Shown piece after piece: positions 3,119-56,343 of a stretch of DNA of 64,000 nucleotides (position 1 is its first letter; each line of letters begins with the position of its first letter). The translations under genes were made by a program, and so were the position numbers. The stretch covers positions 342,735 through 406,734 of the IMG/VR virus record IMGVR_UViG_3300044680_000280, one strand, 5' to 3'. The notes below the pieces were generated by a model. The model searched no databases. It worked only from the letters and a program-made list of their open reading frames with translations, and was not told the DNA's origin.

Positions 3119-3396
3119 AGGCCGCCGACAAGATTTGGATCTACTACCAGTTTTTCACGAAGGAGCCCGCGTTCAAGGAGATCCTTCGTGATGATCCGAG
3201 GCTCGAATGGGACGCTCCGGGCACCCCTCCGGGCACAGTCCGTTACTCCCATCGAAAAGGGGGGAAGTGGACCTACGCCAACTTCGGCAACACCAAGCAG
3301 GAAGCCGCGGACAGCGCCAATCGTTACGATTTCGAAAAGATCGCGAAACTCGAAGCCGAGATCACTAGGATCAAGGCGAGACTCGTCAAGCCGTAA
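3115..3396 (+). CDS. hypothetical protein
   Basis: ATGA overlap with the previous gene. Confidence 0.7.
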   Translation: MKAADKIWIYYQFFTKEPAFKEILRDDPRLEWDAPGTPPGTVRYSHRKGGKWTYANFGNTKQEAADSANRYDFEKIAKLEAEITRIKARLVKP

Positions 3397-3434
3397 AGGT
3401 TGAACTTCCCTCACTCCAGCGCTGTACTACTCCC

Positions 3435-3794
3435 ATGCTCACCAACTTTTCGATCGGTCGCCGCTACCTTTGCACTCCAAAGGGTCGCGCCCACTTCTAC
3501 TTCACGATCCTCGGTCCCGGGCCGAACTACGCGGACAAGCCGTCGAAGACGCACAAACTGTGCCGCATCGACGTTCTCCCCGACCATCTCAACATGCCCG
3601 GCGGATCGTCCAACGGTTCCGTGGCGACCTACTCCCACTCACATTTGAAGAAATACGGGAAGCTCGTCGAGGTCAAGTCGCTCGAGGTGAAGCCTGGGGC
3701 CTTCTGTATGTACGCGGAGTATGTTACGCTCGAGGGTGAGACCGTCTCGATCAGTCTGGAGGGCGAGAACCGAGCCCCCGCGAGCCTCACATGA
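3435..3794 (+). CDS. hypothetical protein
   Basis: class II promoter directly upstream. Confidence 0.7.
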   Translation: MLTNFSIGRRYLCTPKGRAHFYFTILGPGPNYADKPSKTHKLCRIDVLPDHLNMPGGSSNGSVATYSHSHLKKYGKLVEVKSLEVKPGAFCMYAEYVTLEGETVSISLEGENRAPASLT

Positions 3795-3991
3795 AAACTC
3801 GAATGACCAAGGTCGACCGTACTGCCGCGTGGTCCAGGCTCGGTAAAGAGATCTCGCGCTGGCAGAAGCTCAGTGAAACGGACCTCTTTGAGGAGGTCAA
3901 AAGGGAATGGCCCAGCGTCGTCAGCGCGACGCGCGATGAGTGCCTACGATTTCTCGTGCTCAACTTTGTGTCGCGTCACTTCGACGCGTAG
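3791..3991 (+). CDS. hypothetical protein
   Basis: ATGA overlap. Confidence 0.6.
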   Translation: MKTRMTKVDRTAAWSRLGKEISRWQKLSETDLFEEVKREWPSVVSATRDECLRFLVLNFVSRHFDA

Positions 3992-4007
3992 TAGTCGGAG
4001 TCGGAGT

Positions 4008-4014
4008 CGGTGTA
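4008..4014 (+). promoter_or_regulatory. class I promoter motif YGGTGTA, 9-11 nt before the start codon (representative copy; about 60 in window)
   Basis: CGGTGTA-ctgataaggc-ATG; same spacing before dozens of genes on both strands. Confidence 0.8.
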
Positions 4015-4024
4015 CTGATAAGGC

Positions 4025-4273
4025 ATGGACGATCCTCACGTTGAGGTTTGGGTAAAGTGTCTCCCGTGCAACGGAACGGGTGACGAGCCCCATTTGCCTT
4101 TCGAGCAGTACAAGCCCTGGGAAGTACCGCTGGACATCATTGCGACCGGTCATCCACGTCCGTGCCTCCAGTGCAATGCTCATCACACTGGGAAGCATCC
4201 TGGACGAGTTATGATTCTGGTGCCGGTGTCTGAGCTCAAGCCCGCCGTGGACCGTGGGGTGGTCGAGGCATGA
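4025..4273 (+). CDS. small zinc-binding protein (CxxCxGxG...CxxC)
   Basis: class I motif; CLPCNGTG and CLQC. Confidence 0.7.
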   Translation: MDDPHVEVWVKCLPCNGTGDEPHLPFEQYKPWEVPLDIIATGHPRPCLQCNAHHTGKHPGRVMILVPVSELKPAVDRGVVEA

Positions 4274-4569
4274 AGCCCTGCCCCAACTGCGGCTCGACGA
4301 GCCCACGGCGCTTGCACGACCCGGACACGGGGGTCTGCAAGAACGAGTACGGTTGTCTCTCCCGCTGCTGCCGACGCCGCAAGGAAGAGGACGACAAGCG
4401 ATTCGGGGGCAAGCGGCGGGTGCAGTGCACCGCAACGACCGGACATCTGAGCATCACCTTCTGTGAGCTGGGAGAAGGGCACACGGGACTCCACCAACGC
4501 AATACGAAGCAGTGGGGAGGTAACTGCACGCACCCTCTGGCCGCCGCTCTCCACGCGGGGCTCGCGTAA
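4270..4569 (+). CDS. Cys/His-rich hypothetical protein
   Basis: ATGA overlap; several Cys/His clusters. Confidence 0.65.
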   Translation: MKPCPNCGSTSPRRLHDPDTGVCKNEYGCLSRCCRRRKEEDDKRFGGKRRVQCTATTGHLSITFCELGEGHTGLHQRNTKQWGGNCTHPLAAALHAGLA

Positions 4570-8149: not shown

Positions 8150-8824
8150 TCAGAGGTGGTGGAAGTCGATTTCGATGTGGCTGATTTCGTTGCGATCGAT
8201 TCGGCGAGGTAGGTAGTCCAGTGGGTACTTGCCGTTTGTTTTGTAAACTTGCCGCCGATGGTCGGCTCTTTCAATGTTGATGATCGCATCGGTGACCCGC
8301 GTCCAACCACCACGAAACACACGGACAGCATCCAAGGACAGTGGGTTGGCGGTGTAGAAGGGCGGTATCTGTGGGTGAATGCTCGAGCCGTCGTGGAAGT
8401 ACATCACTGGGGGTGTGGAGAAAAGCAACCCCTCTTTCTCTCCCCAGAGCTTCCCATCTTGCGTGAAGACTCGCAGCTCCATTGATGTGTCGATCCTCGG
8501 GACGTCCGTAATGGAAAGAACCGCCTCTTTGAAGGTTCTTACGATGCGGGACCCTCTTCTGGCGGCGCACTGCTCCTCGTACATCTGACGTATGCGGCCC
8601 GGTTCTAAATTGCTGAATGGATCGTTCTCTCGTCGCGGCCACAGGCGATTGAGCTCGTTGAGGTCGACGGGTAGGGAAATCCGACTGAACCTCGTTCCAG
8701 GGAGTTTATCCTCGGGAGTTCTCTCGACAGCCTCTTTGGTCGCTGCGTTGGCACGGGAACCCGCAAAGAGAGCGGTGGGAATGGCGGCAAGGCCGGATAG
8801 AAGGGATCTTCTGGTGGTGTGCAT
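8150..8824 (-). CDS. putative Tat-exported protein
   Basis: N-terminal TRRSLL twin-arginine motif, hydrophobic stretch, ANA cleavage site; class I motif. Confidence 0.65.
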   Translation of the reverse strand: MHTTRRSLLSGLAAIPTALFAGSRANAATKEAVERTPEDKLPGTRFSRISLPVDLNELNRLWPRRENDPFSNLEPGRIRQMYEEQCAARRGSRIVRTFKEAVLSITDVPRIDTSMELRVFTQDGKLWGEKEGLLFSTPPVMYFHDGSSIHPQIPPFYTANPLSLDAVRVFRGGWTRVTDAIINIERADHRRQVYKTNGKYPLDYLPRRIDRNEISHIEIDFHHL

Positions 8825-8899
8825 GGAGAAAGGTTACACCAACGCCTGGGCGTTTTGGGATTCTTCGGCAATTTCTCCCAACGGTGTAATCTTTCTCCC

Positions 8900-9247
8900 A
8901 TGAGCACCCAATTGCAAATGAATGCTCGGTATGCCGAGACCCGCATCGAAAACGCGAAGGGTCAGACCATGGACGAGGTGGTCGAGGAGATGCGACAGAA
9001 GCACTGGGTGCCACTTCGCCGGGCTCTACTGCTGGAAGGTGTGACCCTAAGTCGCTACTGCGACTTTCTCAACGCTTGGCGAAAAGGGATCACGCGTTAC
9101 ATAACCCACGGTTGGCCGGAATTTTGCTACATTCGTCTGCAACCGGGGTCGATTTCGTCGCTGGCGCACCCGGATCAAGGTCGCGGGCTGACCGAGGTAG
9201 GGGTTGTAGACGAGGTTCATGCAGGAAATACAGCGAATGAGCTCTAG
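8900..9247 (+). CDS. hypothetical protein
   Basis: class I motif. Confidence 0.7.
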   Translation: MSTQLQMNARYAETRIENAKGQTMDEVVEEMRQKHWVPLRRALLLEGVTLSRYCDFLNAWRKGITRYITHGWPEFCYIRLQPGSISSLAHPDQGRGLTEVGVVDEVHAGNTANEL

Positions 9248-9445
9248 AAGTTCAAGAGTTGCGGGAAGCTAAAGTTTTCCGGAAACCCTACCCAATCACC
9301 CCTCAATGGGGACGAGTCCTGGAAGGCCCCGAGACGGGTCGAGTCGTGACGGGACTCACTCGAGGTACGCTGAGAACGGAGCGTTGAATTTTTCACTTGA
9401 ACCCGGGTCGGGTTGTGGCTTTACTGTCAACACAAGGAGACAACG

Positions 9446-9709
9446 ATGAAGACTTTTCAGGTGGCAGATCGTGAACACATGGGCGGACACGTTGCGGTTC
9501 TCAAGCGGGTGGACAACGCCGAAGTTCAAGTGCCCCCGTCGAAGGGGTTCTACGTCCGGGCCATCCGAGCCGATGGTTCCCCCAGCACGATCGGCTTCTA
9601 CTCCGACGAGCATACGGCCAACACCGAAATCTCGTTCCTGAAAGGGAACCGTATCCCGGACCCCAAGCTGGCGGACGCCGTCGACTTCGACATCGTTCCC
9701 GGCCGCTGA
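9446..9709 (+). CDS. hypothetical protein
   Basis: class II-like promoter plus AAGGAG RBS. Confidence 0.75.
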   Translation: MKTFQVADREHMGGHVAVLKRVDNAEVQVPPSKGFYVRAIRADGSPSTIGFYSDEHTANTEISFLKGNRIPDPKLADAVDFDIVPGR

Positions 9710-9752
9710 TTCCGACACACAGAAGACCTCTCACCCACACGCAAGAAAGACC

Positions 9753-9890
9753 ATGGAGACCGACAACCAGACCAACGAACAGAACGAGCAGACCAACGAA
9801 CAGGAGATGCCTGACGCCGAACCGGAGTTCAAACTCACGGTACGGAAGCTCGAAATGCCCGTGCGACCGCGCGGCGTCCTGGCCGAGTAA
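9753..9890 (+). CDS. 45-aa peptide METDNQTNEQNEQTNEQEMPDAEPEFKLTVRKLEMPVRPRGVLAE
   Basis: below the ORF-track cutoff; translated by hand; followed by a terminator. Confidence 0.65.
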   Translation: METDNQTNEQNEQTNEQEMPDAEPEFKLTVRKLEMPVRPRGVLAE

Positions 9891-9905
9891 CCGACAACCA
9901 AAAAC

Positions 9906-9943
9906 AAACGGGGTGTGGGCCTTAAAAGGTTCACACCCCGTTT
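9906..9943. terminator. bidirectional intrinsic terminator
   Basis: AAACGGGGTGTG...CACACCCCGTTT stem between convergent genes. Confidence 0.75.
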
Positions 9944-9961
9944 CTATTCCATACCGTGGAA

Positions 9962-10312
9962 TCACTCGTCTTCCACGAGGCGTTGCCATAAGGTCGTTCG
10001 TGGCTCGGAAGGGGGCTCCTCAGGGCACGGTTCTTTCGTGAGGGTTAGGAGGTACTTCCAGACAGGACAGTCGTTGTCGTGTCGCCTCTCGTTGGGCATG
10101 ATGCTTTCAGAGTCGAATCCGCAGAACAGACATTCCCCTGCCTGTTCTGCGTACTCAACGGCATCCTGACCGATTTCGGCTCGGGCGATGAGCTCCTCAA
10201 GAACGCTTTCAAATTCATCCCACACCTTCTTGGCGTATTCGGGCGAACTGAGCGCCTGGGTCCTCCTGGCTTTTTTCAGGAGCGCAAGGGCCTCTTCCCC
10301 GGAACAGGGCAT
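9962..10312 (-). CDS. hypothetical protein, CxxC/H-C zinc motif, C-terminal RTTLWQRLVEDE tag
   Basis: TGATG coupling with the upstream gene. Confidence 0.7.
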   Translation of the reverse strand: MPCSGEEALALLKKARRTQALSSPEYAKKVWDEFESVLEELIARAEIGQDAVEYAEQAGECLFCGFDSESIMPNERRHDNDCPVWKYLLTLTKEPCPEEPPSEPRTTLWQRLVEDE

Positions 10313-10599
10313 CAGTTCGCGGCCGTGTTCCGCGGAGAAGCCTCGGGAGTCGGCATGGCGTCGTTGTGTCCCCTGTCCCAAGCTTCAACCTGCTCCATAG
10401 TAGGCTCGCACCCGACCCAAATTCGTTGTGCGTTGTAGGCCGACATGTCGTAGGAGATGGGGTCGACGAGGGCCGCCGTCTCCGCGGCGGCTTCCGTGAG
10501 GGTCTCGAGGATTTCGTCGAGATCGAACTGCTCCTTCTTAAGTTCAGCCTCCACGAGGGCCTTGATGGATCGCTGAAAGTCCGAGAGCTCTCTGGTCAT
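10312..10599 (-). CDS. hypothetical protein
   Basis: class I motif. Confidence 0.7.
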   Translation of the reverse strand: MTRELSDFQRSIKALVEAELKKEQFDLDEILETLTEAAAETAALVDPISYDMSAYNAQRIWVGCEPTMEQVEAWDRGHNDAMPTPEASPRNTAAN

Positions 10600-10679
10600 G
10601 CTCTAAGCGTTACACCGCCCGGAGCCCCGGGGACGAATCTTTTTCGATCTTCCGCTTCCCGTCGGTGTAATGCTAGAGC

Positions 10680-11690
10680 ATGGAGATCACCGAGGTGGAC
10701 GCCATTCGGCTTACTCACTGTGGCCCTATCGCGAAACGGCCCTGTTTCGAATGTGACTTGCCTTGGATCGAACGGACCTGTAAAAAGATCGAGGAAACTG
10801 AGGTCGTAAGTCTTGCTCCGTGGATCGGTCAGACCCTGCAAACGGCCGTCGAGGCAATTATTGCCGACACCTCGAAGAAAAAGGAGTACCTATCCTCCTT
10901 CAATTTGTTGGTTCGGAACGATCGTCATATCGATCGTTCCCCGGACCCGGAGTTTCCCGAACTCGCGGTCAATAAGTATGGGTGGTCGTATAATGTGTCA
11001 CGGGACTATGTCGTCCAAAAAGGAGACGATATTTTACTCTGGGTCAACACTTACTACCACCATTTGTGCAGCAAAAGGCGCGTGGAACGGCTCTATCGCG
11101 AGCAGTTTGAGGGCATTTTCAAGTCGGCTGGAGTAGAAGCAACCCTCACCAGCATTCCCAACGAATACTGCCCATGCGATAATTGCGGACCCTGGTTCAC
11201 GGCTCAAATGCCGTTCGGAACGCTGAAGCTTGGGTGGCGGAAAAGGGTCATCAACATCGATTGGTCTGACACGGGTTTGGACCTACAAGACCTCTTTATC
11301 AATGAGAGCACGACCAAAGGCGCGCATTTCATTCACGCTTGGGGTGTCAAGAAGGCGGTCGAGTACCTACAGTTGATAGTGAAACATATGCCTGCGAACA
11401 ACGACCTCGAAGTGAAGAGACGAGAGATCCTCGCGATCCACTACCACAACGCTTTGCTCCACACGGTCAAGTTGCAAGACGCTTTAAAAAAGGTCGTCAG
11501 TTTACTCGGTAGCCCCGAGGCTACCGCTCAACTATCAGCCTTCTCCGTGGCCAAAGCCGCTCTCGAGAGCACCGTCTCCCCTCCCAACCCTCTTGCCAAC
11601 CTTTATGATCAGGGGTTCCATACGGGTCACTTGTTTCCCGAGTACATGCATCTGCCTATGAGACCGGAAGACCCGTACATCGAGCCTTGA
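10680..11690 (+). CDS. hypothetical phage protein (IPNEYC..PWF..GWRKRVINIDW motif)
   Basis: 336 aa; class I motif. Confidence 0.8.
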   Translation: MEITEVDAIRLTHCGPIAKRPCFECDLPWIERTCKKIEETEVVSLAPWIGQTLQTAVEAIIADTSKKKEYLSSFNLLVRNDRHIDRSPDPEFPELAVNKYGWSYNVSRDYVVQKGDDILLWVNTYYHHLCSKRRVERLYREQFEGIFKSAGVEATLTSIPNEYCPCDNCGPWFTAQMPFGTLKLGWRKRVINIDWSDTGLDLQDLFINESTTKGAHFIHAWGVKKAVEYLQLIVKHMPANNDLEVKRREILAIHYHNALLHTVKLQDALKKVVSLLGSPEATAQLSAFSVAKAALESTVSPPNPLANLYDQGFHTGHLFPEYMHLPMRPEDPYIEP

Positions 11691-11879
11691 CAGTTACGGT
11701 GGGGTGACTTACTCATGTGGTGGGCCCTACCATCGTAGGCCTCATCTCGCTCTGTTCGACCTACCCTCGAACTCACTGCGGGACAAAGAGGGAGATCCTC
11801 GGCGGGGTGCATTTTTCTCTAGTGCGCTGGTCGGTTTCGGGGTGGGCGGGAGCGACCAGTTGCTCGCTGGAGAACGACG

Positions 11880-12878
11880 ATGCCCACCAACAAGAAGAAG
11901 CGAATCCGTGCCCGCATGGCCAAAACGGGTGAGTCCTACGTGACCGCCAAACGCCACGTCGATCCGCCGCCGACCGAAGAGAAACCCCTCGTTGAGGAGC
12001 GGCCCGTTGCCCACTTCAGAGATGAAAAAACTGGGTTGTACTTGGATTCGTATCCGCCCGAAATCACATATGACAACCTGAACGACAAAATGGCCCGAGC
12101 CCCAACCTATGCAACGATAGGTGAGGGTCACGCCCACTACATTTATCAGAAGCACAATGCCCCATTGAGAGTTCGCGAAGATGCCACAAGCTTCGTCGTC
12201 ACTATGTACTATGACTTTGATGAGGCGGCAGCCATTCGAGATCTTTGCAATGTTGGTTGTAATGAAATCCTCATCGTTCGGGACGAAATAGGATCTATCG
12301 GGGGAGCCACGGGAAGCCGCCCCATCATAGCATCTTGGCTCGGTTCGACCGTACAAAGTACAAGTGGTAAGTACTACGACTCCATCGGTGAACTGCAACA
12401 GGTTATCCTGTACTATAAGAGACTCAAGGGAAGCCTCCCCATCGTCGCGATCACGCATCCTAAAGAGCTGCGATGGGAATTCAAAGCTGGAAACCTGTCG
12501 TGGTTTATTAGAGTCTCGACTTTGGTGAAGCACGGCAACAAGGAATCGGTTCTCAGCTCCTACTTCAAGACGGATGAGGGACTGAAGGCTCTCACGTCCT
12601 TGTGGAACAAAGGCTTCGAGCCTGTTACGCCCTTCGTTGAGACTGTGCTTCGCACGAAGGCCCCTACTCCCGAGGTTAACGAACAGGCGGTCGAAATCCT
12701 TGCAAAGTCCGAAGTAGCACGGCTACGGCGTGTTGAAGCTGCGGCTAGGACGTGTCTCGAACAACTTCGAACCCCGAGCTCCACGTACACCCTCAGGGAA
12801 ACCTCACTTGAGTGCATACTCCTTCAGGCGTTCGACGTTCAGGTTCCCCTTCAGAATCAACCGCCACCGACTTCTTGA
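11880..12878 (+). CDS. hypothetical protein with N-terminal KKRIRARMAKTGESY module
   Basis: 332 aa; GGAG RBS; long structured leader. Confidence 0.75.
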   Translation: MPTNKKKRIRARMAKTGESYVTAKRHVDPPPTEEKPLVEERPVAHFRDEKTGLYLDSYPPEITYDNLNDKMARAPTYATIGEGHAHYIYQKHNAPLRVREDATSFVVTMYYDFDEAAAIRDLCNVGCNEILIVRDEIGSIGGATGSRPIIASWLGSTVQSTSGKYYDSIGELQQVILYYKRLKGSLPIVAITHPKELRWEFKAGNLSWFIRVSTLVKHGNKESVLSSYFKTDEGLKALTSLWNKGFEPVTPFVETVLRTKAPTPEVNEQAVEILAKSEVARLRRVEAAARTCLEQLRTPSSTYTLRETSLECILLQAFDVQVPLQNQPPPTS

Positions 12879-16873: not shown

Positions 16874-17054
16874 GAGTCGAATACAACGCAGGTAGTCGAA
16901 AGGTTCAAGAGTACGTGGCTAGGAGATTTTGCACAGGAGCTTGTTGGCTCCGTACAAGCCAGAGTAGGTCTGTCTCGGCGTACCGAGCATTCGTTTGAAG
17001 TGTAAGGTCGATGCTTACACGAGCACTTCCCCGCCACACCCCGCGCAACGTTTG

Positions 17055-17360
17055 TCAGGCATCCGGATTAGATACCTCAGACTTGAGTTTCGTCAAGAGT
17101 CGCTCGATTCCGAGGGCGATGTTGTCGTAAATGGGGCGCCTCATCGCTGGGTGCGGGGCGGTCCGACCGTTTTTCCAACGTTCGAAACTCGACACGCTCA
17201 AACCGAACCGTACTCTGAGGACCTTCTCCTCGTCAAATACCCTCAGTTCTACCATCCGGTTGATAAGTTCTCGAAAAGTATCAGAGCTGTGCGTGGGGGC
17301 CGCCTTCAGATCCTCCATGAGTTTCGTGAGTTCTGCGATACGGTTGGACACGGTAAACAT
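17055..17360 (-). CDS. XRE-like helix-turn-helix protein
   Basis: FGLSVSSFERWKNGRTAPHP. Confidence 0.6.
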   Translation of the reverse strand: MFTVSNRIAELTKLMEDLKAAPTHSSDTFRELINRMVELRVFDEEKVLRVRFGLSVSSFERWKNGRTAPHPAMRRPIYDNIALGIERLLTKLKSEVSNPDA

Positions 17361-17417
17361 TCTACTACACCAAGATTCTCGATGAGTCAAGACCTCAGCC
17401 GGTGTAACCTGGGAACT

Positions 17418-18152
17418 ATGGGCAACCCGCAAGACCGCATCATTTTCGCTTTGGACCTTCCCACCTACAAGGAAGCCGCCGGTTACGTTTCCGCTCTGCG
17501 GGAACACGTCGGCTGCTTCAAGGTGGGGCTCGAGCTTTTTATGGTTGATGGCCCTTTAATGGTTCACCATATTCAACACGTACACAAAAGGTCGGTCATG
17601 CTCGACCTGAAGTTTCACGATATCCCTGAAACCGTTGCGCGAGCCCTCGTCCAGGCGGGGGATATGGGCGTGCGGTTCGCCACGATTCACGTGCAGCAAA
17701 GAGCAACGATGAAGAAGGCTGTCACGGTGGCAAAGCAGTACGGCATCCAACTCCTCGCCGTGACAGTTCTGACGTCGATGACGGACGATGACCTTTTCGA
17801 CCTGGATATGTCGCCGCCGTTCCTTGGTTTTTTCCCCGGTGGAGTATCGAACCGTGTCGAACGTCTGGCAAAGCTTGCCTGGTCGGAGGGTGTCACGGGC
17901 TTCGTTTGCTCTCCCATGGAGGTGAAGCGGCTCCGTAACAGTTTGCCCAATGCTGTCCTCGTGACCCCAGGAGTGCGTCCCGCGGGTAGTGATGTCGGAG
18001 ACCAAAAACGAATCGGGACGCCGTCTCAAGCTATTTCTGACGGAGCAAACTACATCGTCGTAGGTCGTCCGATTCGAGATGCCGCCGATCCTGTCGCCGC
18101 CGCGGCTCTGATCGCAAAAGAGATCGACTTCGACTTGGTGGACTCCCCTTGA
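17418..18152 (+). CDS. pyrF: orotidine-5'-phosphate decarboxylase
   Basis: IFALD, FKVGLELF, LDLKFHDIPETV, VTVLTS, VTPGVRP, DQKR, VVGRPI; class I motif sets the start. Confidence 0.96.
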   Translation: MGNPQDRIIFALDLPTYKEAAGYVSALREHVGCFKVGLELFMVDGPLMVHHIQHVHKRSVMLDLKFHDIPETVARALVQAGDMGVRFATIHVQQRATMKKAVTVAKQYGIQLLAVTVLTSMTDDDLFDLDMSPPFLGFFPGGVSNRVERLAKLAWSEGVTGFVCSPMEVKRLRNSLPNAVLVTPGVRPAGSDVGDQKRIGTPSQAISDGANYIVVGRPIRDAADPVAAAALIAKEIDFDLVDSP

Positions 18153-23213: not shown

Positions 23214-24575
23214 ATGCGAACCTCCTTCTGTGGGCGACTTCGAGACCGTGCTGAGGCCTTTTGGCAAAAGCACAAGAACTGGGAAGCCCCGCCGATCCCG
23301 AAGAACGTTCGACGAGTCGTGGGTGCGGTTCAAACTTTGCTCCCATTCCTGGCGGACAGGGAGGACACCCTTATCCAAAAGACGCTGAAGGGCATCTCTC
23401 TCGCTGAAGCCGTATACCGCATAGTGGAGGGGAACCGCCTGATTTCCGAGTATTCGGCGTACCTAGAACAGTGGGATTTGGTCCAGTCGTCAAACCGTAA
23501 CCTTGCCCAACTGCTCTCTCAGTCGAAGATCTTGGAGATGCTTCCCTGCAATGAGATCCCGCTTTCCCACGGTGAGGCCAAATTCTGGGAGATTAATTCC
23601 GAGCAGGGGAAGTTTCTACTTGGAATTGGCGAGTACAACTCCAGCCTCGCTTATCCGGAGAATTTCGACGTACCAGGACTCCTGAACAGCCTCTGGAGCT
23701 GGTACGGGAACTGTATAACGATAAGTGTCCCTAAAAGGGGACACGGTAATCTGAGTTTGGAGTCCTTCCAAGAGCACCACGGGGAAATCCTCGGGAGCGC
23801 AAAGGCCACGTACGAACACTTCCTCTCGCAGCATCGCCGCTTTAAGGCGAATGGTAAGTCACGAACTTACCTCTTCTACGGACCCCCCGGCACCGGAAAG
23901 AGCACCTTTTCTCGTAGACTGGCCTTGGAAACGAGCTCCCGCGTGCTCATCATCGACGCAACCTCCATCTCTTTTTGGGGGTGCGACGAACTTCTCTACC
24001 TGCTATCAGCTCTTCAACCGGAGTTTGTTCTGCTGGACGACATTGATCGTGCTTCGAGTTCCATGTTTCTGCCGCTCCTCGAAAGGGTCAAACAAGAGGT
24101 GCCGGAAACGTCGTTCGTAATCACGGTCAACGATGTCTCGAAGCTCGACAAGGCACTGTTTCGACCCGGTCGGATCGATACCGTGCATGAATTTCTTTCT
24201 CCGGTGGAGGACGACCGCCGTGAAGTCATCTTGGGTTATCTCAAGCAGAGTCTTCAAATCGTGGACAAGGAGACCCTGGAATTCCTAGTCAAAAGTACGG
24301 AAGGAATGTCTCAAGACTACCTCAGAGAGCTCGTTCTACGCCTCGACTACGAGGATGTGCCGAGCGCCCTCCTTTCTGTCATGAATCTGTGGAATCTTTC
24401 AGGCGGGAAATCTTCGAACAGCGCACCGGTTCCGGTCGGGTCTTCGTCAGAGCCAGAAGAGTCAGAGTCGGAGCCAAAGTCGGATAGACAACCACCGGTA
24501 AATATGACCAAAAGCACCGTTTCCTGGCGGTCTGTAAAAGATGGCTCAGTTTCGTCATACCCGATTGCCCGTTGA
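23214..24575 (+). CDS. AAA+ family ATPase
   Basis: Walker A GPPGTGKS, Walker B LLDDID, SRH LDKALFRPGRID; class I motif. Confidence 0.9.
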   Translation: MRTSFCGRLRDRAEAFWQKHKNWEAPPIPKNVRRVVGAVQTLLPFLADREDTLIQKTLKGISLAEAVYRIVEGNRLISEYSAYLEQWDLVQSSNRNLAQLLSQSKILEMLPCNEIPLSHGEAKFWEINSEQGKFLLGIGEYNSSLAYPENFDVPGLLNSLWSWYGNCITISVPKRGHGNLSLESFQEHHGEILGSAKATYEHFLSQHRRFKANGKSRTYLFYGPPGTGKSTFSRRLALETSSRVLIIDATSISFWGCDELLYLLSALQPEFVLLDDIDRASSSMFLPLLERVKQEVPETSFVITVNDVSKLDKALFRPGRIDTVHEFLSPVEDDRREVILGYLKQSLQIVDKETLEFLVKSTEGMSQDYLRELVLRLDYEDVPSALLSVMNLWNLSGGKSSNSAPVPVGSSSEPEESESEPKSDRQPPVNMTKSTVSWRSVKDGSVSSYPIAR

Positions 24576-33318: not shown

Positions 33319-33522
33319 CGTAATTTACGGTCGGCTGCACCCTCCCCCTCTCGCGGCCGACCATCGAAGCCCCTGAGCCTAAAACTCGGGGGCTTCGACC
33401 TTTACTGGTCAGAATGAGGACGCTGCGAAACCTCGGCGTGGTTCGCACTTCGGCCTGTCCAGCTTGCGGGAACCCCGAGAATAGCTAAACTTCTTGTGGA
33501 TTTGGATCAGGTGGAGATAAGC

Positions 33523-33723
33523 ATGGCAACCCCTGCCCTCATGGATGGAGACCGACAACTTGTCGGCACATATCGCAGGTTTGGAGAATCTGGGCCGGTT
33601 TACGAGATCCTCGCCATAAGGACAGAGGGTAAAGCGAAGCTAGTTGAAGTTGAGCTCCCTGAGAGCGGCGAGAAAGCGATCGTCAAACTCGAAGACGTGC
33701 TCTCGGATCCCAAGGCCGAGTAG
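33523..33723 (+). CDS. DUF5397-like protein
   Basis: LVGTYRRFGESGPVYEIL..ESGE....L.DP; GGAG RBS. Confidence 0.65.
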   Translation: MATPALMDGDRQLVGTYRRFGESGPVYEILAIRTEGKAKLVEVELPESGEKAIVKLEDVLSDPKAE

Positions 33724-35266: not shown

Positions 35267-36118
35267 ATGACAGCCGTCCATACTGCCTTGGCAAAGAGGT
35301 TCCCGAACCCCGAGTGGGCGACGTTCTTCGAGGTTCGCAATGACGCCGGCTTTCGGGCGTCGCGTTCCGCCGACTTAGTTGCGATGAACACGTGGCCGTC
35401 CCGGGGACTCGCCGTTCATGGGGTTGAAGTGAAGGTCTCTCGGTCGGACTGGCTTCGAGAACTCGCTGATCCCGAAAAGAGCACGGCCGTGCAACGCTTC
35501 TGCGACCGATGGTGGCTTGCTACATTGGACGACAAGATTGCGAAGCTGGAGGAAATACCCGAACTATGGGGACTGCTCGTCCTTCGGGGTAAGAGTCTCG
35601 TCGCGGTGAAGGAAGCTCCCGAGCTCAAGCCTGAACCGTTTACCCGCGGATTCGTGGCGGTTCTGCTACGCTCGGCGAACAAGGGGATGGTGCCGGCCTC
35701 GACGATCGACGAAGCGGTCAACAAACTGGTCGACGAACGCACCAAGTATCTCGACAAAAACCATGAATCGGAAAGGGCACGCATGCGGGACGAACTCAAC
35801 ACGCTCCGTAAGCGTGTGCAAGACTTCGAACGCGCCAGCGGCATCAACCTCGACAACCGCTACGGCCGCTTCAACGGCCTTGCGGACCCGACGGTGTTGG
35901 GCGCTACGGTTGAAGCCATCCTGTCCAGGTCTAGGGGGTTAAATACGGAAACCCTCCGACCGCTCAGAAATCAGCTCGAAGGTGTGCTATCGAGCCTCGA
36001 CACCGTTCTAGAGACCGTGCGGTCTCTAGAGTGCACTGTGGAACTCAGCACTCCTCCAGCAAGTGCTCCCACGCCGACTTCCTCGGAAGCTTCACAGGGA
36101 GACCGTGCGGACATTTGA
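35267..36118 (+). CDS. PD-(D/E)xK nuclease, MmcB-like, with C-terminal coiled coil
   Basis: FEV...RSAD.VAM..WPSRG..VHGVEVKVSRSDWLREL.DP.K. Confidence 0.8.
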   Translation: MTAVHTALAKRFPNPEWATFFEVRNDAGFRASRSADLVAMNTWPSRGLAVHGVEVKVSRSDWLRELADPEKSTAVQRFCDRWWLATLDDKIAKLEEIPELWGLLVLRGKSLVAVKEAPELKPEPFTRGFVAVLLRSANKGMVPASTIDEAVNKLVDERTKYLDKNHESERARMRDELNTLRKRVQDFERASGINLDNRYGRFNGLADPTVLGATVEAILSRSRGLNTETLRPLRNQLEGVLSSLDTVLETVRSLECTVELSTPPASAPTPTSSEASQGDRADI

Positions 36119-36512: not shown

Positions 36513-36533
36513 GGTTCGGTGTACTCTCCTAGC

Positions 36534-37232
36534 ATGGCCGTGTCGGTTGAGTTCGCGCAGAAGGTTTTGACCTCTGTAGAATATACCATATTTTACCTTG
36601 GGGTTGATGAGATAGAGGCCGAACGACGACGAACTGAGATTCGGCAGTGGCTTGATGAGCTTCAAGAGCCAGTAGGTTTTGGGAATTGGACTCGAATGTT
36701 CAGGGCTGATATTTCTGAGGAAGCCCAAAAAAAGGCGAGGCGCATCCTACTGGAGCACTTGAGTCCCGAACAGCTCGAGGAGTACACGAAAGACAACTTA
36801 TTCCATGTGACGGCGCAAAATGGTCGTCGTTTTCGCATTAAAGAGAAGGGGGTTACGGAGCTCAATGAGGCGGGAGAGGAGGCCTTTTTCATTTGCTCTC
36901 ATCCAAAGGGGAAGCTTCCCTCGGCTGACGTCATGTTGGCCCAAAAGCTTGCACTCGAGATCAATTCTGAGGTCATGCTGTCTATCGCCAATCGGCGTTC
37001 TATGAAAGAGGAACAGGCTTCAAATGAGCTCACGAACGAACTTGCTCGGGTCATCGCGCCCCTTCTGAACGAGGAAGAGGATCGTATTCGAATGGAAGAC
37101 TTCCGTCGAAGAGTTGCTGAAGCGCTCGAGGACGGGGCGCGTCGTTACGGTGGAGGACAGGCTCTCGTTGCGATCGAGGAGGCAAACGGAGAAATTAAGG
37201 TGGTCCAAGATCCAGTCGTCGGTGTAGGGTAG
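36534..37232 (+). CDS. hypothetical protein with ICSHP..LP..DVMLAQKLAL motif
   Basis: class I motif; partner of the downstream GG-ending protein. Confidence 0.7.
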   Translation: MAVSVEFAQKVLTSVEYTIFYLGVDEIEAERRRTEIRQWLDELQEPVGFGNWTRMFRADISEEAQKKARRILLEHLSPEQLEEYTKDNLFHVTAQNGRRFRIKEKGVTELNEAGEEAFFICSHPKGKLPSADVMLAQKLALEINSEVMLSIANRRSMKEEQASNELTNELARVIAPLLNEEEDRIRMEDFRRRVAEALEDGARRYGGGQALVAIEEANGEIKVVQDPVVGVG

Positions 37233-37237
37233 TGGCT

Positions 37238-37540
37238 ATGACGACGGACATTGACACCCACGGGCTCGAGACCGTGGATTCGGATTTTGAGAACATCTCC
37301 GAGGAACTCGGCGCGGCCTCCATTATGGGCTCGAACGGGGATACCAAGATCATCTGGGACCCGAAGAAGGAATCGGACGTTAAGTCCGCCGAAGCGATTT
37401 TCAAAGACATGCGAGCGAAGAACTATCTGGCGTTCCGCGTCAAGGGGCGAAAGTCTGAACAGGGGGAGCAACTCAATGAGTTCGACCCCAAAGCTGGACG
37501 GATGCTTCTCATTTTCGTTCCTCCGTTTCAGGGGGGCTGA
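37238..37540 (+). CDS. small protein ending in LIFVPPFQGG (ubiquitin/MoaD-like tail)
   Basis: class I motif 11 nt upstream; C-terminal di-glycine. Confidence 0.7.
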   Translation: MTTDIDTHGLETVDSDFENISEELGAASIMGSNGDTKIIWDPKKESDVKSAEAIFKDMRAKNYLAFRVKGRKSEQGEQLNEFDPKAGRMLLIFVPPFQGG

Positions 37541-37543
37541 CCG

Positions 37544-37855
37544 ATGTTAACCGACACACGCACCTTCCAAACGACAGATGGTGATGGAAATTTCTCTGAG
37601 TGGGTGACGATTGGTAAGTGTAGTAGTGGTAGGGTGGTCGTCGGAATCGGCGTGACAGACGAAGAGTCGAAGCGTAACGCCGCCAAAAGTGTCGAAAAGT
37701 ACGAGAAGTTCATCGCTCAGAATCCAAGGGATCGTCTTAGAGAGTTGCTGGCTGGCGCCCCACGGCCGGAATACCTCCTCGCTGCCGACGTGACAGAGGC
37801 GATTAGGTCCATCGCGGAAATTCTACTCGAGGAGCCCTACGCGGTTTGCGGGTAA
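37544..37855 (+). CDS. hypothetical protein
   Basis: operonic. Confidence 0.6.
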   Translation: MLTDTRTFQTTDGDGNFSEWVTIGKCSSGRVVVGIGVTDEESKRNAAKSVEKYEKFIAQNPRDRLRELLAGAPRPEYLLAADVTEAIRSIAEILLEEPYAVCG

Positions 37856-41227: not shown

Positions 41228-42043
41228 CTACACCGGACGCTTCGGCGGGACTTCTTTCAAAGCGGTTAGAACGCCATACCGCTCGAGGTCCTTCAACTCT
41301 CGATCCTCCGGTTTCCGAAAAACCCATAGATAGCTGTGTCGTTTGCGGGCATGCTGCTGAACCACGTGTTGGACCACCGGGTCCTTGTTCTGGACGAGCA
41401 CAAATAAGTCCTTCGCGTAAAGTCCCATATTGAGGGCGTCCCTCATGACTTCTACATGCGACCAGCGATTAAAAGAACTCTCCACCTCATCCTGACACTT
41501 GACCCATATTAGCCCCCCTTTTTTGACGAACCGCTTAGCCTCAAGCATTCCGTCTCGATAGAGCTCGATGATATCGTTGTGGTACATACCTCGAGTTGTT
41601 TCGCTGTTCTGGTAGTTTGCGTTGACGATCATCTGCCCCGGGTTGTGGGCGTACGGGGGGTCCAAGACGGCGACGTCGAAGGAGTCATCCGGATACTTGT
41701 CCCGGGGAAGGCTACGGAAGTCGTACGGGGCATCGGGGCACGTGATGATGTCCGATTTGTGAAAATCGTACCGTCGAAGGTGTATGCCTCTCCAGAAGAC
41801 ACCCTTGCCCCAGGTCACGTCAGCGACCTTGCTCCCATTGGGCAAGTACATACGGCAAACCTCTTTGACCAAGGCGCTATTGTTTTGGGCGACGTACGCA
41901 CTGTAGACGGGACGGTTGAAGTCGAGGGGCTCGTCCTCCGCACCGCCTAAATTGGCATCGTCAAGGCGCTCACACTCTTCGGCTTCGTTGAGGGTCCCGA
42001 ATGTCTCACCGCAAATATCACAAGCGAAGAAGGGGGTGGGCAT
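41228..42043 (-). CDS. amino (N6A/N4C) DNA methyltransferase-like protein
   Basis: SAM motif VADVTWGKGVFW, catalytic VLDPPY, GGLIWVKCQD; class I motif. Confidence 0.8.
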   Translation of the reverse strand: MPTPFFACDICGETFGTLNEAEECERLDDANLGGAEDEPLDFNRPVYSAYVAQNNSALVKEVCRMYLPNGSKVADVTWGKGVFWRGIHLRRYDFHKSDIITCPDAPYDFRSLPRDKYPDDSFDVAVLDPPYAHNPGQMIVNANYQNSETTRGMYHNDIIELYRDGMLEAKRFVKKGGLIWVKCQDEVESSFNRWSHVEVMRDALNMGLYAKDLFVLVQNKDPVVQHVVQQHARKRHSYLWVFRKPEDRELKDLERYGVLTALKEVPPKRPV

Positions 42044-55043: not shown

Positions 55044-55331
55044 TCAGACGGGCTCGGGTCCTGGCGACTCATGTTGGCTCACAGGGGTGAGGGAGAGGGT
55101 GAAGAATTTTCGGAACACCCCTTCGAGGGTGATGGCTTCGAGCTCGGTAACGGGCACCCCGTCAATTTCGATGAAGACCTCGAATCCTACGTCGAGGGAC
55201 TCCGTGCGCACATGCACCCTTTCCGGGTCCACTTTGAACACATGCGCCGTGACTTTCTGAAAGCCTAGGGCGACGTCAGAGGGGTTTCCGCCTTGTTCGA
55301 CCCAAGAAAAGCGCTCTCGATTTCCAAGCAT
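55044..55331 (-). CDS. hypothetical protein
   Basis: class I motif. Confidence 0.55.
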
Positions 55332-55398
55332 GTCTACCCATCTGTACACCGGGTTTTATCCCTTGAATAGAGCTGATCGCTGGTGTAAGGTCAAATTT

Positions 55399-56343
55399 AT
55401 GGACGCTGACATCGAAGGGGCGATCATTCGTTTGAAGCGCGAACGGAACGCTGTTCTCTTGGCTCACTACTACCAGGACAGTGAGATTCAGGATGTCGCG
55501 GATGTCATCGGCGATTCTCTTCAGCTTGCGCGAACGGCGGCGGAGACGACAGCGGACGTCATCTGCTTTGCCGGAGTTCACTTCATGGCGGAGACCGCAA
55601 AAATCTTGAACCCGACGAGAACGGTCATCCTACCCGACCTCAACGCTGGGTGCTCCCTCGCCAACGGGTGCCCCGCGGATCGATTCGCCCAATGGGTGGA
55701 TAACTGTAGGAAGCACGCTCCAAACAACGACGTGACGGTTGTCAGCTATATCAACTGTACGGCCGAGGTCAAGGCGCTCTCGGACATCATCTGCACGTCG
55801 TCCAACGCGGTGAGGGTCATCGAGAGCATCCCCGAGAGCAGCACGATTCTCTTCGCGCCCGACAAGAACCTTGGCATGTGGGTCCGCAAAAAGACCGGAC
55901 GACCTATGGTCTTTTGGCAGGGTACTTGCATCGTCCATGAAACATTCAGCCAGCGAAAGCTCATCGGACTCAAGACGCAGTATCCTGGAGCTCAGGTCAT
56001 CGCCCACCCCGAATGTGAACCCGCGGTTTTGGACATGGCCGACTTCGTGGGGTCAACGACGGCCCTTCTGAGCTATGCGGTCGCCAGCTCCTGGGACCAG
56101 TTCATCGTCGTCACCGAGTCTGGCATCCTGCACCAGATGCAGAAAGAGGCGCCAGAAAAGACGTTCATCCCCGCGCCTCCCGACGGCAACTGCGCCTGCA
56201 ACGAGTGCCCGTACATGAAAATGAACACACTCGAGAAGGTGTACGCCTGTCTCCGAGACTTGTCGCCTCGCATCGAGATGGACCCCGCCCTGCTTGCGCG
56301 GGCTCGGGTTCCGATCGATCGGATGATGGCAATCTCAGTCTAA
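55399..56343 (+). CDS. nadA: quinolinate synthase
   Basis: [67 protein letters not shown]. Confidence 0.97.

Follow-up and report, generated by a model that had tools for sequence, protein, structure and literature searches.

In this study we show that two adjacent genes in a roughly 400-kb phage genome, here called gene A and gene B, belong to a two-gene cassette that recurs in many large phages and a few bacteria without an activating enzyme beside it. Gene B encodes a small protein that is predicted to adopt a ubiquitin-like beta-grasp fold and ends in Gly-Gly, while gene A encodes a partner with one invariant cysteine, at which the Gly-Gly tail is predicted to dock. The analysed stretch of DNA, referred to as the window, is the last 64 kb (342735-406734) of a 406,734-bp IMG/VR virus record, which is classed as a provirus with 85% estimated completeness. 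The region around the pair is a run of short, same-strand ORFs, most of which have no family match. The relevant features, in window positions, are as follows.

36534..37232 (+): gene A, 232 aa from the ATG, with an alternative in-frame GTG start at 36519; residues 1-60 form an N-terminal helical part with two conserved Trp, residues 61-156 the core, and the C-terminus a helix plus hairpin
36714..37001 (+): conserved core domain of A (residues 61-156), consisting of a helix, the LSPEQ helix, a four-strand antiparallel meander, a loop and a long helix (D-x-MLAQKLALE ... AN)
36894..36896 (+): Cys121 codon (TGC), at the end of strand 4, the candidate catalytic or acceptor residue
36927..36929 (+): Asp132 codon, at the start of the long helix
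37238..37540 (+): gene B, 100 aa, a predicted ubiquitin-like beta-grasp protein; residues 1-22 are variable and poorly modelled, residues 23-92 form the beta-grasp and residues 93-100 are the tail FVPPFQGG
37532..37537 (+): terminal Gly99-Gly100 codons, directly followed by the TGA stop
37544..37855 (+): downstream ORF of 103 aa without a family hit, probably co-transcribed but not conserved next to the pair at other loci

Gene A contains ...FFICSHPKGKLPSADVMLAQKLALE..., which includes Cys121, and gene B ends LLIFVPPFQGG. The stop codon of A (TAG, 37230-37232) lies 5 nt before the ATG of B, and the next ORF starts 3 nt after the stop of B, so the genes look like one operon. The preliminary description of this region had reported a 100-aa protein with a Gly-Gly end directly following a Cys-bearing protein, and this observation is confirmed; its coordinates and both of its sequence strings are exact. 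Its interpretation, a phage-borne ubiquitin-like protein (Ubl) plus a cognate Cys ligase or protease used for protein tagging, sulfur transfer or as a decoy, is partly supported by our results. Conservation of the terminal GG, the fold of B and the co-occurrence of the two genes had been named beforehand as points on which this idea could fail, and it survived all three, so that a Ubl with a cognate Cys protein is well supported. However, the label E2 remains unproven and the label protease is unlikely.

A family of GG-ended proteins and its constant neighbour

A word-indexed search with B found only one relative, which is 54% identical and also ends in GG. An exhaustive HMMER search with that pair, however, matched 1293 clusters at 50% identity with E<=1e-3, and 325 with E<=1e-10. 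Of the 150 best hits, 131 end exactly in GG, and almost all matches run to the last residue of the protein. By adding the hits of a profile search we collected 265 family members, of which 238 (90%) end in GG, 9 in AG and 4 in another residue plus Gly, so that the last residue is Gly in 251. The remaining 14 (about 5%) have GG followed by 1-45 non-conserved residues, a pattern that is also shown by Ubl precursors. In an alignment of 119 sequences, whose rows were chosen to end in GG, the invariant columns are G34, G99 and G100, and D35, W40, E47, A51, F55, A65 and F82 are nearly invariant. None of these 119 members hits any Pfam family, including ThiS, MoaD and ubiquitin, and the B protein of the window hits nothing in PHROGs, NCBIfam or PADLOC. 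No data source names the family beyond "hypothetical". Profile searches against PDB sequences gave only noise, such as troponin and cresol dehydrogenase, and nothing for B.

Gene A has few close relatives in the word-indexed search, and it likewise has no Pfam, PHROG, NCBIfam or PADLOC hit. These relatives share a core, LSPEQ ... F-V ... YRI ... NV ... C-x-x-P ... D-x-MLAQKLALE ... AN, and the A protein of the window contains ...ICSHPKGKLPSADVMLAQKLALE... We ran HMMs of this core and of B over every fetched locus. The first nine loci, which are large metagenomic phage contigs of 130-530 kb, smaller fragments and GenBank Virus Rctr197k, all carry both genes 0-4 genes apart. Ten of ten IMG/VR loci found from the B side have B directly followed by A. 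Of thirteen IMG/VR loci found from the A side, twelve have B, and the thirteenth is a second A copy in a genome whose other copy has B. Of nineteen bacterial loci, mostly from Alphaproteobacteria and including the complete Bradyrhizobium sp. BWA-3-5 chromosome, sixteen have B directly upstream of A, and at least two of the remaining three lie at contig edges. The second B copy in that Bradyrhizobium genome also has an A. The usual order is B then A, whereas the window has the rarer order, A then B. Several A paralogues can accompany one B, with three at each of two loci (L002 and L030) and two at a third (L009), where an A lies on both sides of B. In contrast, clustering of all neighbouring ORFs revealed no third conserved family in 27 phage loci or in 19 bacterial loci. 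Such conservation of the terminal GG, of the Cys and of the adjacency of the two genes in nearly every locus examined is far beyond chance.

In one phage lineage, represented by a complete 435-kb phage genome with terminal repeats (L037) and a related 231-kb record (L039), B and A are one open frame, in which ...FVPPMQGG-LMVM... is followed by about 190 Thr/Ser-rich residues and then the A core. Such a gene fusion is classical evidence of a functional link. Upstream of the core, most phage copies of A carry two to four W-x-x-W(N) motifs in Thr/Ser-rich sequence followed by an Arg/Glu-rich coiled coil, while most bacterial copies are little more than the core. We also considered that bacterial A copies are membrane-anchored, but only 2 of about 18 have a hydrophobic helix.

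The pair sits in accessory or replication-type regions of large phages, where neighbours include PrimPol, VapE, RuvC, ribonucleotide reductase, NAMPT, PTH2 and a kinase. In bacteria the contexts vary and include Ku and topoisomerase IB, STAND NTPases and a DDE transposase. The distribution is sporadic, since none of 300 other sampled genomes of the same class has B, and tblastn of B members and of an A member against 50,697 GenBank phage records found only the uncultured Virus Rctr197k.

Predicted structures of A, B and their complex

The AF2 model of B (pLDDT 78) has the order b-b-a-b-b-b followed by an 8-residue tail. The best structural matches in PDB and Swiss-Prot are individually weak but nearly uniform in kind, as nearly all of them are beta-grasp domains: NEDD8, SUMO, PB1, Raf-RBD, UBX, DIX, MOCS2A/MoaD, TtuB and the Ubl of a bacterial E1-E2-Ubl complex. 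The ESM Atlas gives viral hypothetical families at TM 0.84-0.86, followed by ThiS/MoaD-type and UBX clusters. We therefore accept a beta-grasp fold for B, although this does not demonstrate homology to any particular Ubl family.

With an alignment of 13 sequences, AF2 models residues 61-160 of A at pLDDT 91-98, as a long helix, the LSPEQ helix, four antiparallel strands (89-93, 99-103, 106-110 and 116-121), an 8-residue loop and a long helix (130-151). Over 36 distinct cores of this roughly 95-residue domain, which are otherwise only 20-40% identical, only Cys121 and Asp132 are invariant, while Asn153 is present in 35 of 36 and Gln137 in 34 of 36. The residue at position 123, two after the Cys, is often His but also Gln, Gly or Tyr. 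A Cys-His dyad is therefore not conserved, and for this reason we rejected the possibility that A is a Cys-His protease; neither was a peptidase fold found. There is no HPN motif upstream of the Cys, the local motif being C-x-[HQGY]-P downstream of it, and neither the A protein of the window nor five A homologues have a Pfam hit such as UQ_con or Prok-E2. Foldseek searches with A against PDB structures were dominated by helix-hairpin and propeller-blade matches, with no E2, DUB, rhodanese or MoaE, and by the calibration of the search itself the score may reflect only a common arrangement. A structure search of the Atlas with the core gave no E2 either. AlphaFold DB holds about 15 clusters of uncharacterised bacterial proteins with the same core at E 1e-8 to 8e-3. 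Thus, A is a new, unnamed domain whose predicted topology is compatible with a minimal E2, but its membership in the E2 superfamily is unproven.

Co-folding of A (residues 50-165) with B (residues 20-100) gave an ipSAE of 0.86 in all three runs, against 0.00 for the best of three controls. That mark was reached by 58 of 80 solved complexes and by 2 of 110 mismatched pairs, although these counts hold only roughly here because the alignments were our own. The runs share at least 92% of contacts, and the pLDDT of the partner is at least 86. In the predicted interface, A residues 121-129 and 132-153 face B residues 64-78, 92 and 94-100. The sheet of B (64-78 and 92) and its b1-b2 loop (28-35) pack on the conserved helix (132-153) and the first helix (60-77) of A, with Asp132 contacting B residue 30, while the tail of B (94-100) lies on the loop 121-129 that begins with Cys121. 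This geometry resembles a closed E2~Ub arrangement, but it resembles equally a MoaD tail inserted in MoaE, and it is a prediction rather than a measurement.

A possible Ubl and Cys-carrier module and its alternatives

That A and B form a conserved, interacting two-gene Ubl module appears very likely to us. How such a module would work is much less certain. Our favoured but tentative proposal, which we do not hold to be more likely than not, is that A acts as an E2-like carrier. In this view, the C-terminal glycine of B would be activated in trans, either by a host ThiF/MoeB-type adenylating enzyme or, where present, by a phage E1, and then passed to Cys121 as a thioester. From there it would go to targets chosen by the variable N-terminal part of A, that is, the Trp-rich repeats plus coiled coil in most phage copies and a membrane helix in some bacterial copies, and tandem A paralogues sharing one B would then address different targets. 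The family, the conserved GG, the beta-grasp model, the invariant Cys and Asp, the gene linkage and the in-frame fusion are results of our analysis, and the heterodimer with its tail at the Cys loop is predicted, whereas activation and adenylation of B, catalysis at Cys121, the thioester and the transfer to targets are inferred. Several findings do not favour this proposal. No activating enzyme belongs to the module, although a protein that ends in GG-COOH cannot form a thioester without an ATP-dependent step; there is no HPN motif or match to an E2 family; the fusion shows that a free carboxylate is not always encoded; all structural evidence comes from predictions; and the invariant Cys could be structural. 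A bolder form of this reading, which we consider unlikely, is a two-protein tagging system consisting of a Ubl and a single Cys carrier of a new fold, with no E1, E3 or peptidase of its own, by which giant phages and a few bacteria would tag host or phage proteins, either by hijacking the ThiF/MoeB sulfur-carrier E1 of the host or through an unknown activation chemistry.

The main alternative, which we consider unlikely but the strongest of the rivals, is that A and B form an obligate non-covalent heterodimer without conjugation. B would then be a beta-grasp adaptor subunit whose small Gly-Gly tail is conserved only because it must fit a narrow pocket on A, as the MoaD tail fits MoaE, and the complex would act by binding something, possibly as a decoy or sponge for host Ubl-based immunity enzymes (Bil E1/E2, CBASS Cap2) or as a regulator of a host or phage process. 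The strongly predicted heterodimer with a buried tail, the absence of an E1 from the module and the lack of a recognisable enzyme family on either side agree with this view, and the natural B-A fusion could still dock in cis without a free carboxylate. However, packing alone does not easily explain an invariant Cys and an invariant Asp placed at the tail site in such divergent sequences. In addition, the short extensions after GG in about 5% of B proteins suggest processing to a free GG, and several A paralogues per B fit a shared modifier better than a fixed complex.

These extensions, together with the predicted position of the tail and the B-A fusion in a complete genome that lacks JAB, also raise the possibility that A is an E1-independent Cys transpeptidase or peptidase that cleaves after GG in B precursors or B-A fusions, forms an acyl-enzyme on Cys121 and either releases mature B or transfers it to a lysine. 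The stand-alone E2 of E2-CBASS acts in this manner, as it processes the C-terminus of cGAS, links cGAS to a cysteine and then ligates it to a lysine, and its operon type encodes no E1 (10.1101/2022.05.25.493364). We regard this as improbable, because about 90% of B genes, including the one in the window, stop right after GG and have no peptide bond to cleave, and hence provide no energy for transfer, and because no His is conserved near the Cys.

A sulfur relay appears slightly less probable still. B would be thiocarboxylated at its GG end like ThiS, MoaD or TtuB, and Cys121 would carry or receive the sulfur, as a persulfide or acyl-disulfide, for a nucleic-acid or cofactor modification. The weak structural neighbours of B include MoaD/MOCS2A, TtuB and ThiS-family clusters, a single invariant Cys faces the tail in the predicted complex, and host ThiF/MoeB could supply activation. 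However, A matches no rhodanese, TusA, MoaE, ThiG or PP-loop family, no sulfur-metabolism gene is linked to the pair, and the variable N-terminal targeting-type regions and tandem paralogues of A are unlike metabolic enzymes. The least probable of these readings is a toxin-antitoxin-like or enzyme-inhibitor pair, in which A would be a small Cys/Asp enzyme and B its cognate inhibitor, with its tail plugging the active site. The two small, tightly spaced or overlapping genes, their variable island-like contexts in bacteria next to a transposase, STAND NTPases or Ku, their sporadic distribution and the tail predicted to cover the Cys loop would agree with it. Antitoxins, however, are rarely this conserved, as B keeps its fold and end across 1293 clusters; one B with two or three A paralogues and an in-frame fusion are unusual for toxin-antitoxin pairs; and no known toxin fold was found for A.

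Relation to described Ubl systems and the E1 cassette of this genome

Ubiquitin-like conjugation in the phage-bacterium conflict has so far been described on the bacterial side (Bil, Bub, type II CBASS), and always with an E1. Here, a large, unnamed family of mostly phage-encoded Ubls is paired in nearly every locus examined with one Cys protein and no E1. If the pair conjugates, it would be the smallest Ubl system known and a case of viruses bringing their own modifier, and it would raise the question of whether the sulfur-carrier E1s of the host can be hijacked. Even if the pair only binds, it defines two new protein families and a conserved complex in giant phages. The pair appears to be undescribed: our literature searches found Bil, Bub, CBASS-Cap2 and E2-CBASS but no phage Ubl plus Cys-partner pair, which is an absence within one library and not proof of novelty, and a comparative review of jumbo phages does not mention Ubl, JAB or ThiF systems (PMC7824862).

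Among known systems, the Bub (bacterial ubiquitination-like, 6E/DUF6527) operons also encode a beta-grasp Ubl with a conserved C-terminal Gly next to, or fused to, a small carrier protein, and the fusion in L037 and L039 parallels the Ubl-E2 fusion BubAB of type I Bub operons, which a JAB domain cleaves after the conserved Gly (PMC11601596). However, Bub always has an E1 (BubCD or BubBD), its operons encode a DUF6527 protease (BubE), type I also has a JAB peptidase, and Bub works through oxyesters, whereas here no E1, JAB or third gene is linked, the conserved residue is Cys, and there is no sequence match to PADLOC or NCBIfam models. Bil (bacterial ISG15-like) systems also have a Ubl (BilA) and an E2-type Cys protein (BilB) that is thought to pick targets itself without an E3, but Bil is a four-gene bacterial defence operon with its own JAB (BilC) and E1 (BilD), while our pair is mostly phage-encoded, has two genes and shows no detectable homology to Bil. 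In E2-CBASS a lone Cys enzyme without an E1 in its operon likewise binds the C-terminal tail of its partner, but that partner is a CD-NTase whose C-terminus is cleaved; here the partner is a dedicated beta-grasp protein that usually already ends in GG, and no CD-NTase or effector is nearby. ThiS, MoaD, TtuB, SAMP and Urm1 are also small beta-grasp proteins that end in GG, their tail inserts into a partner protein (ThiG, MoaE), and they are activated by ThiF/MoeB-type E1s, which most bacterial hosts have. In contrast, A resembles neither MoaE nor ThiG, and the genomic context is phage accessory regions rather than cofactor operons.

The preliminary description had stated that no E1 or JAB gene is visible in the window, and this is true. 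The genome (G000) nevertheless carries both 143 kb upstream, at ~236.7-240.8 kb on the minus strand, where we found a minimal ThiF-family protein (73 bits), a JAB with the H-S-H ... S-x-x-D motif (24.7 bits, just under the Pfam cut-off of 25), a 305-aa protein and a vWA protein. We considered that this cassette serves B, but rejected it as the general answer because the cassette has its own Ubl and is missing from most B-A genomes. Of 11 B-A-carrying records searched in full, only 4 have it, and five of the six phage genomes that are at least 90% complete, including the one with the B-A fusion, have neither ThiF nor JAB. JAB is found only together with this separate cassette. Activation of B, if it occurs, must usually come from outside the phage genome, and host ThiF/MoeB, which adenylate GG-ended ThiS and MoaD, are the obvious candidates; this is established biochemistry for those families but pure inference for B. 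The Ubl of the cassette is a 95-aa ORF between the JAB and the E1 that ends ...RPKTPFG-SV. Its orthologue in another B-A genome (G007) stops right after ...RPKTPFG, while in Rctr197k it continues into another domain. The cassette is therefore a separate JAB-Ubl-E1 triad with its own modifier, a type of phage-borne Ubl system described from phages and mobile elements (Iyer, Burroughs and Aravind 2006, PMC1779556), and where the positions were compared (G000, G007 and a further record, W01) it lies far from the B-A pair.

A second, separate Ubl system in the same genome

In addition to the B-A pair, we found that the same phage genome (G000) encodes a second, separate Ubl system, which lies outside the window at G000:C1 ~236,700-240,840 on the minus strand and corresponds to positions 8719-12835 of locus L008, the stretch of this genome that carries it. 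The cassette comprises the following genes, given in gene order.

vWA protein, 621 aa (L008 10970-12835)
305-aa protein
JAB peptidase, 129 aa
95-aa protein ending RPKTPFG-SV
minimal ThiF-type E1, about 191 aa

This cassette is conserved at 50-60% identity in G007, another phage genome carrying the B-A pair, and in GenBank Virus Rctr197k, and in G007 the small protein stops right after ...PFG. A vWA protein is also found near the B-A pair itself in another locus, L014, where a TROVE/Ro60-type vWA protein (L014 8486-10210) lies about 2 kb from the pair, while in G000 the vWA protein sits beside the E1-JAB cassette.

Fused, extended and probably membrane-anchored forms of A and B

In two related phage loci, L037 (positions 3131-4294) and L039 (same coordinates), from records IMGVR_UViG_3300037313_001869 and IMGVR_UViG_3300037420_001874, B and A are fused in frame with no stop after GG, and about 190 Thr/Ser-rich residues link them. 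The 435-kb genome is complete and has neither ThiF nor JAB. Another form of B is found in Virus Rctr197k (KX853510.1, locus L005), in which B is a tandem double domain of 142 aa ending in TIPG. This virus also carries annotated CRISPR arrays and transposase-like genes within a few kb of its B-A pair (L005 4312-4566 and 11530-12213).

The N-terminal halves of the longer A proteins, which are encoded in the five loci listed here, carry 2-4 repeats of a W-x-x-W(N) motif embedded in Thr/Ser-rich sequence, followed by an Arg/Glu-rich coiled coil.

L010 8282-9076, longer A protein
L009 8350-9204, longer A protein
L012 9103-10098, longer A protein
L014 6256-6960, longer A protein
L015 6279-7109, longer A protein

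We speculate that these repeats may bind targets, or may bind B in the way LIR or SIM motifs bind Ubls. Unlike the other copies, two bacterial or metagenomic A copies, those of locus L064 (G010:C1:5820085-5823303) and of protein P0004, have a strongly hydrophobic N-terminal helix and are probably membrane-anchored.

Genes surrounding the pair in the window and in other loci

Within the window, matches to known families were obtained for the gene just upstream of A, for a 75-aa ORF and for four other genes.

33496-33723, 75-aa ORF matching DUF5397
35267-36118, gene just upstream of A, matching phrog_14517 (E 1e-46) and phrog_5429, the latter annotated 'DNA repair protein'
16995-18152, OMP decarboxylase with a 147-aa N-terminal extension
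23214-24575, AAA ATPase
41228-42043 (-), N6/N4 DNA methylase
55330-56343, quinolinate synthase NadA (E 3.5e-118)

The OMP decarboxylase, NadA, the AAA ATPase and the DNA methylase are either auxiliary metabolic genes or signs that the end of the record, which is classed as a 'provirus', approaches host DNA. In L013, a locus on a 143-kb phage contig, a gene with a Pfam AcrVA2-like hit, an anti-CRISPR family, lies about 3.4 kb downstream of the B-A region (L013 9650-10726), while in L002, a locus on a phage-like contig, a ribosomal protein L7/L12-like gene (Pfam Ribosomal_L12; L002 6418-6825) lies directly after three tandem A paralogues.
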